Origin: Neoconidiobolus thromboides FSU 785
Taxonomy: Eukaryota; Fungi; Entomophthoromycota
Direction of reading: 5' to 3'
Length of the DNA: 64,000 bases
NCBI GenBank assembly: GCA_025603075.1
Contig: MU626366.1
Span: 1-64,000 of the forward strand
Part shown: one piece after another, positions 54,346 through 59,663 of the stretch
Position numbering within the stretch: the stretch's first letter is position 1
Layout: every line of letters starts with the position of its first letter
Notes under the pieces: model-generated
The model's input: only the letters and a program-made list of their open reading frames with translations
Databases searched by the model: none
Told to the model about the DNA's origin: nothing
Program-made: the position numbers and the translations under genes

Positions 54346-55614
54346 ATGTCAAGTTTATCAGAGAGTATACGTAAGAAGATAGATTCTATGCGTGAGGAGA
54401 AACGCACCCACTTTGAAAAGATCAAGGGCGAAATTGATATGGAAATCCATCGTAAAACTATTCTATCAGAGCAATTACATACCAAGTTTGATGAAGCAGT
54501 AAGATCATATCAAAAATTAATTGAATCCCGTTCTGAAAGGGAAGGTATTGAAGACGAAATAAACCCGTTTTTAAAGTTTAAATACCCAAACCCATTTTTA
54601 AGCAACTCATTAGATAGCAATCTAGGGTCAGCCATTTCAGCTTCTAGATCCATAGATACTAATAGTCAAGACGGGGAAACTCAAAACAACAACCAGCCCT
54701 TAGAAAAGGAAATTCATAGCATTGATTCAAATTCAGATGGTGAGCAAAGTTCAAATGGCGATTCACCTTTTAACAACCGAGAGAGTGCTATGAAACCCGA
54801 GTTAAATCGTCAAGAAAGTACCATAAATACTGATTCTAACAACCAGAGGTCTAACCCAAATTTAAAGGTAAAAACCATATTGAAAGGTAAAAAAATTAAT
54901 TATGGCATCCTTTATGATGCAATCAACGCAATTGGTAAGTCAATTGAAGGGGATAAAAATGAAACGCGAGAAGAGAAAATCAAAAAGGCACTTGAAAAGT
55001 GCTATGAGCTTAAAGATTTTTATGATGGTATCTCTAAATCTTTACACATGTCACGCCGTAGATTAGATTTATGTAGAAGAAACTATCGTCGAGAATTACA
55101 ATCATTCGATAGGTTAGAAAGAGAATTGATTGGCATTTCGGATAATTTTGAAGTTATGCTTAAAGATGAGTTAGAAGATAACTTAAACGATATAGTTGAT
55201 AAGGTAAAAGACAAATCAGCAGAATCTTTGGAATGCCTTAGATCAAGAAGAGACCGTGTAATTCATAAAAGTCAGAAGCGTAATCGATTTTTGAATCGTT
55301 TGGGAGCTAAAAACGATCATTCTAAAGGTATTAAATCAAGACAAATATCAGATGTAACTCAAAAAAACCAAGAAGTTTATGATAAAGTAACTGGGCAGAA
55401 ACGTAAGTCCGGGGCATTGACCCAATCAAAAGCCGCAACTGAGATAGATGAATCTAATGAGTCTGTCAAAGGATCATCTAAAAGCAAAGTAACCGTTGAA
55501 GAGCCTGCCAATGGAGGCTTTAATTCTTCAAAGATTGCTTTAACAGCTTCTGGAGTGGCTCTTATACCATTTGCCTATAATTATATTTTCCCTTTTATTC
55601 GTCAAATGTTTTAA
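54346..55614 (+). CDS. Uncharacterised coiled-coil protein with C-terminal hydrophobic (tail-anchor-like) segment, intronless
   Basis: 422-aa ORF; two charged helical regions separated by an S/N-rich linker; ends KIALTASGVALIPFAYNYIFPFIRQMF. Confidence 0.75.
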   Translation: MSSLSESIRKKIDSMREEKRTHFEKIKGEIDMEIHRKTILSEQLHTKFDEAVRSYQKLIESRSEREGIEDEINPFLKFKYPNPFLSNSLDSNLGSAISASRSIDTNSQDGETQNNNQPLEKEIHSIDSNSDGEQSSNGDSPFNNRESAMKPELNRQESTINTDSNNQRSNPNLKVKTILKGKKINYGILYDAINAIGKSIEGDKNETREEKIKKALEKCYELKDFYDGISKSLHMSRRRLDLCRRNYRRELQSFDRLERELIGISDNFEVMLKDELEDNLNDIVDKVKDKSAESLECLRSRRDRVIHKSQKRNRFLNRLGAKNDHSKGIKSRQISDVTQKNQEVYDKVTGQKRKSGALTQSKAATEIDESNESVKGSSKSKVTVEEPANGGFNSSKIALTASGVALIPFAYNYIFPFIRQMF

Positions 55615-55890: not shown

Positions 55891-56181
55891 ATATACAATA
55901 TTTGAAAGTAAATTTGTAATTAAAGTCATAAATATATATTTATAAAAAAATTATTTTAAACTATTTAAATTGAACTCTTGTTACCTTTTGCTCCATGTAA
56001 AAGCTTTGATTATTATTTATTATTTAATATCAGTTCAATGAATATAATTTGATAAAGATAAATATTTAATAATATAATTTATATATTTGATAATAAAAAT
56101 TTAACTTAAGATTTAATTGGCTTATGTCTTAATATTAGTATAAAATTAAAGAATAATGTATTATTTATTTTAAGTTATTAT

Positions 56182-58381
56182 TTAATTAGAAGCATGGTGA
56201 GCATTAGTCTCTAAATCAAACTCATCAGGTTGCTCTTTCTTTTCTGAAGTTGAAGGCTCTGATTCATCAAAGTAATTTTCAACATTTGGTTCTCTACCAA
56301 ATTTAGTCATTAACCAATCCCATCTTGAGATGTCATGTGATTCTGTCTTAGTACCAATTAATAGGACTACAAGTGTCATAAATACTATACCAATTAAAAG
56401 TCCAGCCCAAGCAGGGTAAGCATTAAAACCAACAGGAAGATAACCAAAAATAACGGAAGTAAGTGCTACTAATAAAGCATAAGGTAATTGAGTAGTAACG
56501 TGATCACGTACTGGACATTTAGATGAAAGCGCGGAAAGGATAGAAGTGCCTGAAATTGGAGAACATTGGTCACCGAAGATAGCACCAGTTAAAATAGATG
56601 AGATGCAGTGTACTAATAAATCATGGTCATCTTTAGCTGAAGCATGTACTAAAGGAATAACTAAAGGAAACATTATAGTCATAGTACCCCAAGAAGTACC
56701 CGTGGTAAATGAAATAATACATGAAATAATAAAAACCAATACGGGTACGGCGTGAGGATCAAGAGTCGTAGAAAGAGAAGATACAATAAAGGTAGCAGCA
56801 CCAAGGTCGGCGAAAGCAATACCAATACTCCATGCTAATATCAAAATAAGTAAAGGCTCAACGATATCTTTGATACCATGTAAAAAGATAGCAATAGAAA
56901 GTTGGAAAGACATAATATTTTGAATGCGGTATAATATCATTGCTATGATACAAGCAAGGAAAGAAGAGTATAATAAGGAACCATAAGGATCCCCAGAGCC
57001 TGCTAAACCTGTGGCGGATAAATCGGGCACTTCTTCTTGCATTTGTTTATAATAACCACTCATGAAAAGGGCAACAACGGTAACAACTACAACTACAATA
57101 ATAGGGATAACAGCGTTAATCCAACGACGTGGAGTTTGATCACTTGGTTTAAGTGGATCAGTGTCATTCACATCACCAATCAAAACGGTATTGTCTTTAA
57201 CTAAACGTTTTCCAAAGAAAGCTCTACGTTCAGCAACTAGCATTGGACCAAAATCGCGTTTCAAAACCAAAATAATTATAATGAATAATAACATATAAAG
57301 AGGATAGAAACGAGATTGAATAGTTTCCAAGAAGATCAAGAAAGGCTCTTTATCAATTTTTAAAAGAGTAAATTGAGCTTTAATTAACCCGATTTCGAAA
57401 CCAATCCAGGAAGAGATAGGAGCAATTGAAGCTGGTGGAGAAGAAGTTGCATGAACTAAGAAGGCTAACTTTTCTCTTGATAAGAATAAAGTATCTGTGA
57501 CAGGTTGCATATTTGAACCAACAATCAAGCAAGAAGCAAAATCATCGAAGAAGATCAAGATTCCTACTATAAATGTTGCCCATTGACCTCTCCAGCGGTT
57601 GGTTGCTAACCTTGTTACGCTGTTTGCCATACCATGGGCACCCCCTGACTTTTGAATTAAAGCGATCAAACCAGAAAGGTAAAATGTGAATAATATAATT
57701 TTAACATTATCGGAGTTAGCTACAGCTTGTACAGTATAGTAATCCAACATACGTAAAAACCCGTTAACTGGATTAAAACCATTAATGAACATTGAAGAAA
57801 GGAATAAACCTAACATTAAAGCAAAAAGTGCTTGAGAAGAAAACAATGCTACTGCTAATAAGACGATGATAGGAATTAAAGTAACGCCACCGGGCATACC
57901 ATGGACAGTTCCAGAATTAGTTCCAATTTCTTTATCATCTGCTGAAACAGAGAGTACCACTCTACGTGCAACAGCGGAAGGAATATCAATATCGGAAATT
58001 GAATAAGTAGAAGCCATAAAACCTTGAGGAAGTGAAGCTGATAAAGATAGCTCATTACCATCATCTATGCTAAGTTTCCCAGAACTTACTTCTTTTTCGC
58101 TACCTTCTTCGCCAACTTTGACAACATAAGTTAAGTTGCTGGTAGTAGCTATTAAAAAGATAAGTTTATAGCTATTAATGAATTAGAATGAAATTACCTT
58201 TAGAATATATTAAATTGAATGAGAGTGACATTTTGAAGTTATATAGGACAACTTTAGGAAACGTAACATCCCCTAATGTTATTGGAGATGTAGAGTCATC
58301 TTGTGCATTAGTAGTTGAAAATAATAGAAATACTGATAGCAGTATATTCAATATAAAAGATTTGTAGTGTAATAATCTCAT
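56182..58381 (-). CDS. NhaC-family (prokaryote-type) secondary transporter with N-terminal signal peptide and extracellular domain, 2 exons
   Basis: Exon 1 (signal peptide MRLLHYKSFILNILLSVFLLFSTTNA...YSK) splices in frame over an intron at about 58152-58197 to exon 2. Exon 2 carries IFFDDF...LSREKLAFLV, TTGTSWGTM, GAIFGDQCSPIS and DHVTTQLPYAL. Confidence 0.9.
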
Positions 58382-59663
58382 AACACTAAATTGAAATAAA
58401 AAACAATAAAAATTATTTAAATTGATTTATGCTGTTTTTTATACTATTTTTATTTCAATTTATTGATTCTATTAATATTCAATTTTCATGATCATATGGT
58501 TTATCTAATAATTTAATCAAGTTATGTTCATTATCTGAAATCTACCTTAAATTAAGGATATTAATTTCAATAAAGGTTCTATACTAACCTAATCTGCTTG
58601 TATATAAAAAAGAAAATATCTTAATTATTATAATTAATTATTATATATTTATGTATCTAACATAATAATAAAACAAATTTTATTGATAGTTTGGGTATAT
58701 TTAATTAGCATAATATTCTTTAATAGTGAATATTATGCCTTTATTTTATATTTTTTGGTGGTAAATTTCGTTTTAGGCATATTCTTAAAGTGGAACTTTA
58801 CCTTAATTCAGATGATCAGAAAATGAATTTATTACCCAGCATGACTAATATTGGTATGGTACAACTACATTTTTAAAGGATAGATAGCATCTGACTTAAA
58901 CTATCAAAATATAAGTACATGTTTAAAGTAAAGTAGTTATTTAAAGAAACAAAAGTTCTTAAATTACTTATGTCTGCATTCATGTTATTCATAATTCAAT
59001 ACATAGTGAAACCTTAAAATGATTTGTGTCAATTTTAATCCCCTGGTTTTATAATGTTTTACTTTGAGATTTAATCAATTATATATAATTTAATTAGAAA
59101 ATAAAAATTAGTTATAATATAATAACATTTATAAAAACTATAAACATTCTGATAGTTTTGAAAATTTCATGCTTCTGTTATAAAAGTCAAAGCTATCTGA
59201 TAATAAAGTTTTTTATATTTCATTCCTTTAAATAGTATAATTAAAAGGAGCAAAGAATAAGATAAAAGAATTATAATACTTTTAAATTATCAGAACTGAG
59301 ATCACAAAAATTTTATCTTTATGAATTCAATTTGCTTATATATCTACATTTTATTCTTCATTTTTATCAGAATATAGATTACGTTATAGTTATAGCAAGC
59401 TATTACCTTATAAAAAAATATTGATAACAAAACGTTTCTAGCATAGTATGAGTTTTAATATGAACAAATTTGCTTATAAAAATGATATAAAAAGTGTTGG
59501 GTGCGATATAAATGCATCTGATTAATATGGCTCCTTCTTATCATAGTTAACTGATGTAAAATTTGTTATTTTAAAACCAATTAACAAAATACTATGAATA
59601 ATCAAATTATAAAAACAAAAATTTATTTATTTCATATAAATTGATAAACTATGTTTATAATAA

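Follow-up and report, generated by a model that had tools for sequence, protein, structure and literature searches.

A long-form NhaC-family transporter gene of Neoconidiobolus thromboides, very probably vertically inherited and with a site remodelled in fungi

Introduction

How does a fungus come to possess, behind a signal peptide and an outer domain, a transporter of a family that is usually thought of as bacterial? This question is raised by a gene on the minus strand, at positions 56,182 to 58,381, of a 64,000-nucleotide stretch of DNA from Neoconidiobolus thromboides FSU 785 (contig MU626366.1, positions 1 to 64,000; hereafter the window). A model that read the window without database searches had proposed that the gene encodes a prokaryote-type NhaC transporter acquired by horizontal gene transfer (HGT), to which a signal peptide and an ectodomain of eukaryotic kind were fused and whose conserved residues were rewired, possibly with a changed coupling ion or substrate or with the role of a sensor (transceptor). 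We refer to this proposal as the original prediction.

Characterised NhaC proteins extrude Na+ and Li+, and the carriers of the family include Na+/H+ exchangers and the malate/lactate carrier MleN (PMC9408914). ArcD, an arginine/ornithine carrier, gives its name to an NCBIfam model within the family. A literature search found no paper on a characterised eukaryotic member. The computational analysis described here indicates that the gene is very probably a transcribed, vertically inherited member of the long-form NhaC branch (PF03553, TC 2.A.35), in which the architecture is ancestral and the site was remodelled in fungi.

Results

Family membership and protein architecture

The full-length protein of ~716 amino acids comprises a signal peptide, an immunoglobulin (Ig)-like domain, the PF03553 body and an acidic tail (Table 1). 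Searches and structure predictions were run with the exon-2 product, with the database protein P0001, which begins at Met51, and with the paralog P0005 for the complete ectodomain. Site residues are numbered below as in P0001, and adding 50 gives the full-length number.

The profile check that had been suggested for the NhaC (Na_H_antiporter) family bore out the assignment, with a match to PF03553 at 134.1 bits against a gathering score of 23. The protein has both motifs that are found throughout the family, GTSWGT and GD..SP(I/L)S; in the other aligned sequences, including archaeal, clostridial and Priestia nhaC proteins, the two motifs are either present or one to two residues off (GTAYGT, GSSWAT, AD..SP). 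The models of individual members were not matched at their cut-offs. TIGR00931, the equivalog for NhaC proper, gave 36.7 bits against 370 and matched only residues 396-573 of the exon-2 product; the Tet(35) model NF000013 gave 150.4 bits against 750, and the model of the ArcD arginine/ornithine antiporter, NF052307, gave 18.4 bits against 650. The protein is best described as a homolog, and not an ortholog, of Tet(35). It has the attributes of the long-form branch in that a signal peptide and a homologous beta-sandwich precede the first transmembrane helix (TM1) and in that it groups apart from short NhaC proteins in a rooted tree. What it does not have is the long-form site, since S, Q, H, Q and G replace N217, R226, D244, H539 and D545, a set that marks a fungal sub-variant of the long-form clade.

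The signal peptide and ectodomain are shared with bacterial homologs

The homolog set consisted of the best 120 of 321 hits from a word search that scored the best 8,000 candidates and provided few names. At least 70 amino acids precede TM1 in 63 of the 77 bacterial homologs (median 108), in all 8 algal homologs (median 125) and in 26 of the 32 fungal ones (median 136). The bacterial proteins P0044 and P0055 begin with a Sec-type signal peptide and a beta-rich segment, and then enter TM1 through the same (I/V)PG..LP sequence. When profiles were built from the N-terminal domain only, with the signal peptide and TM1 cut off, the fungal profile matched the algal one (E 4.6e-9), the algal matched the bacterial (3.3e-5) and the fungal matched the bacterial (5e-4). 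Structural matches to bacterial clusters in the ESM Atlas agree with these links and cover query residues 1-617. Because 63 of the 77 bacterial homologs bear the same Sec-type signal peptide and N-terminal domain, the idea that a eukaryotic signal peptide and ectodomain were fused on has to be given up. The two parts are ancestral and were inherited together with the transporter.

The single intron of the gene lies inside the N-terminal domain and not at its boundary, with ~80 further residues of the domain encoded by exon 2. Potential glycosylation sequons (N-x-S/T) are denser in the fungal N-terminal domains than in the bacterial ones (1.48 versus 0.61 per 100 amino acids), which fits with luminal exposure of the domain.

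One bacterial subclade nested within the long forms (P0083, P0087, P0090, P0097 and P0106) has 2-4 residues before TM1; unless these gene calls are truncated, the N-terminal domain was lost secondarily there.

Eukaryotic members form one clade

That the family is essentially prokaryotic, as the original prediction had it, holds in part, as 40 of the best 120 homologs are eukaryotic (32 fungal and 8 algal in the residue counts below). Among these 120, the Entomophthoromycotina are represented by three N. thromboides paralogs, Entomophthora and Massospora; the Zoopagomycotina by Piptocephalis, Syncephalis and Thamnocephalis; and the chytrids by Quaeritorhiza, Gaertneriomyces and Phlyctochytrium, along with Hyaloraphidium. 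The eukaryotes outside the fungi are the red algae Rhodosorus and Porphyridium, the dinoflagellate Symbiodinium and unnamed metagenomic sequences, so that the homologs span ten named fungal genera and algae.

Maximum likelihood trees, the analysis that had been proposed to decide on the origin of the gene, were inferred with 'quick' searches and with support from the Shimodaira-Hasegawa-like approximate likelihood ratio test (SH-aLRT) only, one from 117 rows and one rooted with nine distant NhaC proteins from plasmid records. In the 117-row tree the eukaryotes lie on one side of a branch with a support of 100, and the fungi (100) and the algae (99) form separate clades. In the rooted tree the support is 100 for the eukaryotes, 87 for the bacterial long forms and 95 for both together, and the eukaryotes are sister to the bacterial long forms rather than nested inside them; no bacterial donor lineage could be identified in this tree. 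The fungal subtree follows taxonomy, with the chytrids and Hyaloraphidium followed by the Zoopagomycotina and then the Entomophthoromycotina. Within the latter there are three paralog groups, each made up of Neoconidiobolus and (Entomophthora, Massospora).

The structure and composition of the gene fit in with this topology but do not by themselves decide whether it is foreign. The N. thromboides paralogs P0005 (724 amino acids, L004:1501-3736) and P0006 (721 amino acids, L005:1501-3715) have one intron each (61 and 49 nt), whose position and phase are those of the intron in the window gene. Other fungal homologs have none (the Entomophthora ortholog and Piptocephalis) or one (Gaertneriomyces, ~62 nt), so among fungi a long body without introns is typical of the family. 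The G+C content of the gene, 0.36-0.38, is like that of neighbouring coding sequence. The same N-terminal domain and substitutions recur in chytrids, Monoblepharidomycota, Zoopagomycotina and Entomophthoromycotina, a distribution that the original prediction had itself named as evidence for vertical inheritance. Horizontal acquisition in any recent sense is contradicted by this distribution and by the single eukaryotic clade sister to bacteria, and the intron shared by the paralogs and the neighbour-like G+C content agree. The gene is therefore old in early-diverging fungi and not a recent bacterial import; an ancient bacterial origin of the eukaryotic clade is possible.

Two features of length were seen among the homologs. 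The Syncephalis proteins P0011, P0012 and P0026 are 760-804 amino acids long, and BLAST aligns them in a single piece to only about half of the query, hinting at a large insertion. In the algae, P0031, P0034 and P0038 have an insertion of ~20-35 residues after the helix that ends near P0001 residue 420.

Conserved site residues are replaced in the fungal clade

The window protein reads IFFDDFASCLIVG / SREKLAFLVHATSSP / GDQCSPISGTS / CPVRDH where the bacterial consensus is IFFDDYAN.LIVG / SREKLA.IVDSTAAP / GDHCSPISDTT / CDHIDH. Much of the conserved framework is intact: in the 77 bacterial homologs, 96 positions reach a conservation of 95% or more, and the window protein keeps 74 of these, including all four motif cores, and DD213/214, D538, GTSWGT and SPIS are retained. 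The change from CDHIDH to CPVRDH affects less conserved positions. The D>H, H>Q and D>G changes had been pointed out as falling on conserved positions, and this proved correct, as none of the 77 bacterial and 8 algal homologs departs from D244, H539 or D545. They are real, but they are not special to the window gene, since residue 244 is His in 32/32 fungal sequences and is hence a trait of the clade (Table 1). Gly545 is found in the window orthogroup and in Zoopagomycotina, and Asp is kept in the chytrids. The paralogs vary further, with Leu (P0006) or Gln (P0005) at position 539 and Ala (P0006) or Ser (P0005) at position 545.

Four of the replaced residues were located in the AlphaFold2 (AF2) model of P0001. 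S217 is in helix 214-231, just past a break at 210-213; H244 is at the end of helix 236-245, adjoining the break at 246-247; Q539 ends helix 520-540, ahead of the SPIS break; and G545 is the first residue of helix 545-553.

Among distant NhaC proteins, the pair at 244/539 reads D/H in Methanosphaera, Halogeometricum, Vibrio, Treponema and Eubacterium, whereas Salinivibrio and Edwardsiella have Q/M and Clostridium has S/V. The two positions change together across subfamilies and would therefore be a coupled pair; their behaviour points to a role in specificity and not to universal catalytic residues.

The plasmid-borne NhaC genes with Q/M at the positions of D244/H539 (Salinivibrio, L018:535-1950; Edwardsiella, L020:535-1980) directly follow genes for pyridoxal phosphate-dependent enzymes, a transsulfuration-type transferase and a class V aminotransferase in these loci, and they may represent an amino-acid-carrying subfamily.

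Predicted fold

The AF2 model of P0001, made from a 98-sequence alignment, has a mean predicted local distance difference test (pLDDT) score of 91.0 and a predicted TM-score of 0.88. Six strands lie in residues 1-94, with block pLDDT values of 81-94. The complete N-terminal domain was modelled from P0005 (pLDDT 91.6) as a signal-peptide helix and an eight-strand sandwich, and the segment that corresponds to the signal peptide forms a separate helix ahead of the beta domain. In the window protein, HGMPGG and then TM1 come directly after the beta-strand domain. When five N-terminal domains were scanned against Pfam at E values up to 10, no family was found for this domain. At the other end, the pLDDT drops over the last blocks of the P0001 model (94, 70, 52, 51, 40), and the distal ~35 residues of the C-terminal tail are probably disordered.

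The transport domain is predicted to have the elevator fold of the IT superfamily. Foldseek searches of the PDB with the model returned MleN (an integrative model), DASS carriers (NaS1, INDY, VcINDY, NaCT and NaDC3), Pho90, TRAP SiaQM, the AbgT proteins YdaH and MtrF, and ArsB at E values from 3.5e-7 to 1e-3. Neither the protein nor its 98-sequence profile matched the sequence of any PDB chain, and no experimental structure of an NhaC-family member was found by sequence search of the PDB. The helix breaks of P0001 carry the conserved motifs, namely IFFD at 210-213, TS at 246-247, GT at 495-496 and SPIS at 541-544. In solved IT-fold transporters, VcINDY and its relatives, it is the tips of the hairpins together with the broken helices that make up the sites for ions and substrates. 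By analogy with these structures, and from the secondary-structure string of the model, the four motifs may together form the ion/substrate site.

The gene is transcribed and spliced

Contigs from three public runs of two studies provided the splice evidence. The labelling of these runs as RNA is a guess, and the contigs were taken as mRNA-derived because the exact excision of a GT..AG intron is a signature of mRNA. Contigs of X1, X2 and X3 join position 58148 to 58198 and skip 49 nt, which read CT..AC on the plus strand. The two-exon model with its splice in the N-terminal extension, which had been predicted from sequence, agrees with the contigs of all three runs; of the intron ends given at that time (58152-58197), the donor was right and the acceptor, at 58149, was 3 nt off. 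The transporter region is free of introns as predicted: an X1 contig of 2,048 nt shows no gap against the window over 56199-58148, with which it is collinear, and this rules out a second intron in that interval. An X2 contig ends at 56146 in a loose end of 14 T on the plus strand, the mark of a minus-strand poly(A) site. The gene is thus real, expressed, spliced and polyadenylated, with two exons, in Neoconidiobolus thromboides.

The product is a 100% match to N. thromboides FSU 785 K502DRAFT_325080 (P0001). This NCBI model is marked 'partial' and has 665 amino acids. It shares the splice junction but begins only at Met51, so that the signal peptide and the initial strands of the ectodomain are missing from it (window 58229-58381). 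Both the transcript contigs and homology to the paralogs favour the ATG further upstream, at 58381, over Met51. Exon 1 can be aligned with the N-termini of paralogs and orthologs, and an in-frame TAA lies 15 codons 5' of the ATG (58381-58379, minus strand) with no intervening ATG. Correcting the N-terminally truncated model to the upstream ATG is a gain in annotation.

The contigs contain 35 variant positions, 32 of them synonymous and 3 conservative (R2K, V157I and Q432K), and the transporter gene is therefore under purifying selection.

Contigs of X1 ('organism A') are identical to the window sequence. Over 56575-58377, X2-X4, which belong to one study ('organism B'), yielded pairs of contigs that differ at 8-10 sites per 166-202 nt, nearly all synonymous, which suggests two haplotypes or strains ~5% apart.

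Feature coordinates

Table 1. Positions in the window of the gene, of the parts of its protein and of the substituted residues; fungal counts are out of 32 sequences.
Feature	Position	Strand	Description
5' untranslated region, minimum extent	58382..58407	minus	X2 transcript-type contig reaches 58407
Exon 1	58198..58381	minus	ATG, 61 codons and first base of split codon 62; open reading frame, and junction in three runs
Intron	58149..58197	minus	49 nt, GT..AG, phase 1; skipped in X1, X2 and X3 contigs
Exon 2	56182..58148	minus	1,967 nt including stop TAA (56184-56182)
3' untranslated region to poly(A) site	56146..56181	minus	X2 contig ends at 56146
Predicted signal peptide, residues 1-26	58304..58381	minus	n-region basic, hydrophobic core of 14 residues, site of cleavage type at TNA|QD; read off the sequence
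Predicted extracytoplasmic Ig-like beta-sandwich, residues 27-143	57904..58303	minus	~117 amino acids, intron inside, one N-x-T sequon (NLT)
Predicted membrane transport domain, residues 144-660	56353..57903	minus	All-helical in AF2 model; IT-superfamily elevator fold
Pfam PF03553 Na_H_antiporter, residues 303-631	56440..57426	minus	E 8.3e-39, 134.1 bits, cut-off 23, profile 4-300 of 303
Acidic C-terminal tail, residues 661-716	56185..56352	minus	Not conserved in alignment
P0001 position 105			Pro in bacteria and algae; fungi Ile 23, Val 6
P0001 position 215			Tyr in bacteria and algae; fungi Tyr 13, Phe 9, Thr 4, Leu 4; Phe in window protein
Ser267 (P0001 S217)	57532..57534	minus	Asn in 97% of bacteria and 100% of algae; Ser in 31/32 fungi
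Gln276 (P0001 Q226)	57505..57507	minus	Arg in 100% of bacteria and algae; fungi Arg 13, Gln 8, Val 5
His294 (P0001 H244)	57451..57453	minus	Asp in 77/77 bacteria and 8/8 algae; His in 32/32 fungi
Gln589 (P0001 Q539)	56566..56568	minus	His in all bacteria and algae; fungi Gln 25, Leu 3, Met 3, Val 1
Gly595 (P0001 G545)	56548..56550	minus	Asp in all bacteria and algae; fungi Asp 12, Gly 11, Ala 5, Ser 3, Val 1
P0001 position 547			Thr in bacteria and algae; fungi Ser 22, Thr 10

An open reading frame for 422 amino acids, convergent with the transporter gene, lies at 54346-55614 on the plus strand; its translation is a charged, coiled-coil-like sequence with a hydrophobic C-terminal stretch.

Discussion

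What the protein may do in the fungus can be approached through its parts. It would enter the secretory pathway by means of a cleavable signal peptide and would hold an Ig-like sandwich of ~117 amino acids on the extracytoplasmic face, joined straight to TM1, while the remaining body would function as a dimeric elevator-type secondary transporter. By analogy with DASS, TRAP and AbgT, the motifs IFFDD, V-H/D-xTS, GTSWGT and GD-x-CSPIS would lie at helix breaks that line the ion/substrate site. The architecture of signal peptide and ectodomain is presumably older than the split between bacteria and eukaryotes in the long-form branch, and the single eukaryotic clade may stem from one ancient acquisition or from earlier ancestry. 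Among fungi the gene would have survived in chytrids, Monoblepharidomycota and Zoopagomycota, with a triplication in the Entomophthoromycotina. Remodelling on the fungal stem would have put His in place of Asp244, Ser in place of Asn217, and Gln or a hydrophobic residue in place of His539; in the orthogroup of the window gene, Gly for Asp545 and Gln for Arg226 would have come in addition. Together, these replacements may alter ion coupling or substrate in comparison with the bacterial and algal proteins.

One possibility is that the fungal clade, with its re-engineered ion/substrate site and conserved outer Ig-like domain, constitutes a functionally distinct and hitherto undescribed class of eukaryotic transporter, for example one that is coupled to H+ and not to Na+ or that carries another substrate. 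We put this forward tentatively and with some doubt. Fungal membranes are energised by protons, and a shift from Na+-linked to H+-linked transport is proposed because of this and because two Asp and one His were lost and one His was gained. This shift is our preferred guess, although we would expect such a guess to prove wrong more often than right.

Several points weigh against the picture drawn here. The shift from Na+ to H+ is a guess. The genes next to the bacterial homologs P0107, P0092 and P0052 give no clue to the substrate, as they are housekeeping genes unrelated to one another (uvrC, recA and a Zn-dependent alcohol dehydrogenase) and have no common theme. The literature search turned up no transport data on long-form members, whether from bacteria or from eukaryotes. 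The motifs were assigned to a single site on the basis of a secondary-structure string and analogy with IT-fold structures, and cleavage of the signal peptide and localisation to the membrane are predictions from the sequence. The trees are limited in that they come from quick searches with SH-aLRT support only, on the best 120 word-search hits and nine plasmid-borne outgroups.

An alternative account of the origin of the gene is that an NhaC gene passed recently from a bacterium to the fungus, where a new 5' exon afterwards supplied it with a signal peptide and an ectodomain of eukaryotic kind. The transporter body does lie in one exon of 1,967 nt in a genome reported to be intron-rich, and the nearest relatives outside the eukaryotes are bacterial, at 36-41% identity. 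This account is nevertheless almost certainly wrong. The parts supposedly gained are already present in bacterial homologs, the intron splits the ectodomain instead of marking a fusion boundary, the eukaryotes are one clade that is not nested in bacteria, orthologs and paralogs are spread across four fungal lineages, the base composition is that of the surrounding coding sequence, and a scarcity of introns is general in the fungal members. Transfer between eukaryotes, such as between an alga and an early fungus, in place of descent from one early eukaryotic ancestor, deserves more weight. The distribution is patchy, covering early-diverging fungi, red algae, a dinoflagellate and unnamed metagenomic eukaryotes, and no Dikarya, Mucoromycota or animals were among the word-search hits, although with the best 8,000 candidates scored and few names given these absences are weakly supported. 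The fungal and algal clades are reciprocally monophyletic on stems of 0.24-0.32 changes per site, which argues against such an exchange, and we consider it improbable.

With respect to function, the protein might be an ordinary NhaC-type Na+(Li+)/H+ antiporter in which the residue changes are neutral for coupling. Its membership in PF03553, the retention of DD213/214, D538, GTSWGT and SPIS, and the Na+/Li+ extrusion by characterised relatives are consistent with this. However, the score against TIGR00931 is far below the cut-off, and since the family also includes malate/lactate and arginine/ornithine carriers, the substrate cannot be read from membership. Changes are found, moreover, at five polar or charged positions that are invariant in bacteria and algae, and those positions vary between NhaC subfamilies. 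This explanation is therefore unlikely on balance, yet it is the strongest of the competitors considered here. The idea that the protein is a non-transporting sensor (transceptor), which was part of the original prediction, received no support from any result, and it may be considered together with the possibility that the gene is decaying. Several site residues have been lost, and binding of a ligand by the ectodomain is conceivable. Both possibilities are opposed, however, by the strong purifying selection on the gene, its transcription and correct splicing, the retention of 74 of the 96 positions conserved in bacteria, the persistence of the site changes across the 32 fungal sequences and across three paralog groups that are themselves conserved, and the equal presence of the ectodomain in bacterial homologs; both are very unlikely. 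A vertically inherited long-form transporter with a site remodelled in fungi is the explanation that we favour.

A clade of bacterial-looking carriers has thus been retained by fungi of early-diverging lineages and by some algae, and the fungal substitutions offer a small, clean set of residues bearing on ion and substrate specificity in a family without an experimental structure. The locus also holds a caution for HGT screens, in that a bacterial family and a long intron-less exon are together insufficient as evidence of transfer.

The protein can be compared with known systems at several distances. The ectodomain resembles generic Ig-like and E-set sandwiches (the ASF1 core, the Ig unit of the Brr2 Sec63 region, RhoGDI, the Ig-like domain of GH2 enzymes and CARDB) at Z 8-10, with root-mean-square deviations of 2.6-3.4 over ~90-108 residues, but has no sequence family match; scores in this range reflect a common arrangement only, and no function can therefore be transferred to it. 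The transport domain shares its fold with DASS/SLC13 carriers (VcINDY, NaCT and NaS1), Pho90, TRAP SiaQM, AbgT (YdaH and MtrF) and ArsB, with a Foldseek probability of 1.00 and TM-scores by target of 0.45-0.60. The helix breaks at 210-213, 246-247, 495-496 and 541-544 correspond to two pseudo-repeats, in each of which a helical hairpin is paired with a broken helix. Sequence identity to these transporters is 10-15%, however, and none of them has an Ig-like ectodomain behind a signal peptide.

The characterised NhaC members, NhaC of Bacillus firmus and Priestia, MleN/YqkI of B. subtilis, Tet(35) and ArcD, are closer in that they share PF03553. MleN is the best structural match in the PDB (integrative model 9a59_A, E 3.5e-7), and Priestia nhaC keeps the GTSWGT and GD..SP(I/L)S motifs. 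These proteins, however, are ~460-470 amino acids long and have neither signal peptide nor ectodomain, and Priestia nhaC has Lys at the site of the bacterial long-form His539.

The closest counterparts are the bacterial long forms, such as P0044 of Deltaproteobacteria, P0055 of Ignavibacteriaceae and P0107 of Bacteroidetes. They have the same order of parts, from Sec-type signal peptide to PF03553 body, are 36-41% identical over 75-92% of the query, enter TM1 through (I/V)PG..S/T.LP, and have identical motif cores (IFFDD, GTSWGT, GD..SPIS and H..TQLPYA). They differ in that their N-terminal domain is shorter (a median of 108 versus 136 amino acids before TM1), in that the intron and the acidic C-terminal tail of the window gene are absent, and in that they have N217, R226, D244, H539 and D545 where the window protein has S, Q, H, Q and G. 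While the NhaC family itself is already known, what is new here is an uncharacterised eukaryotic variant of it.

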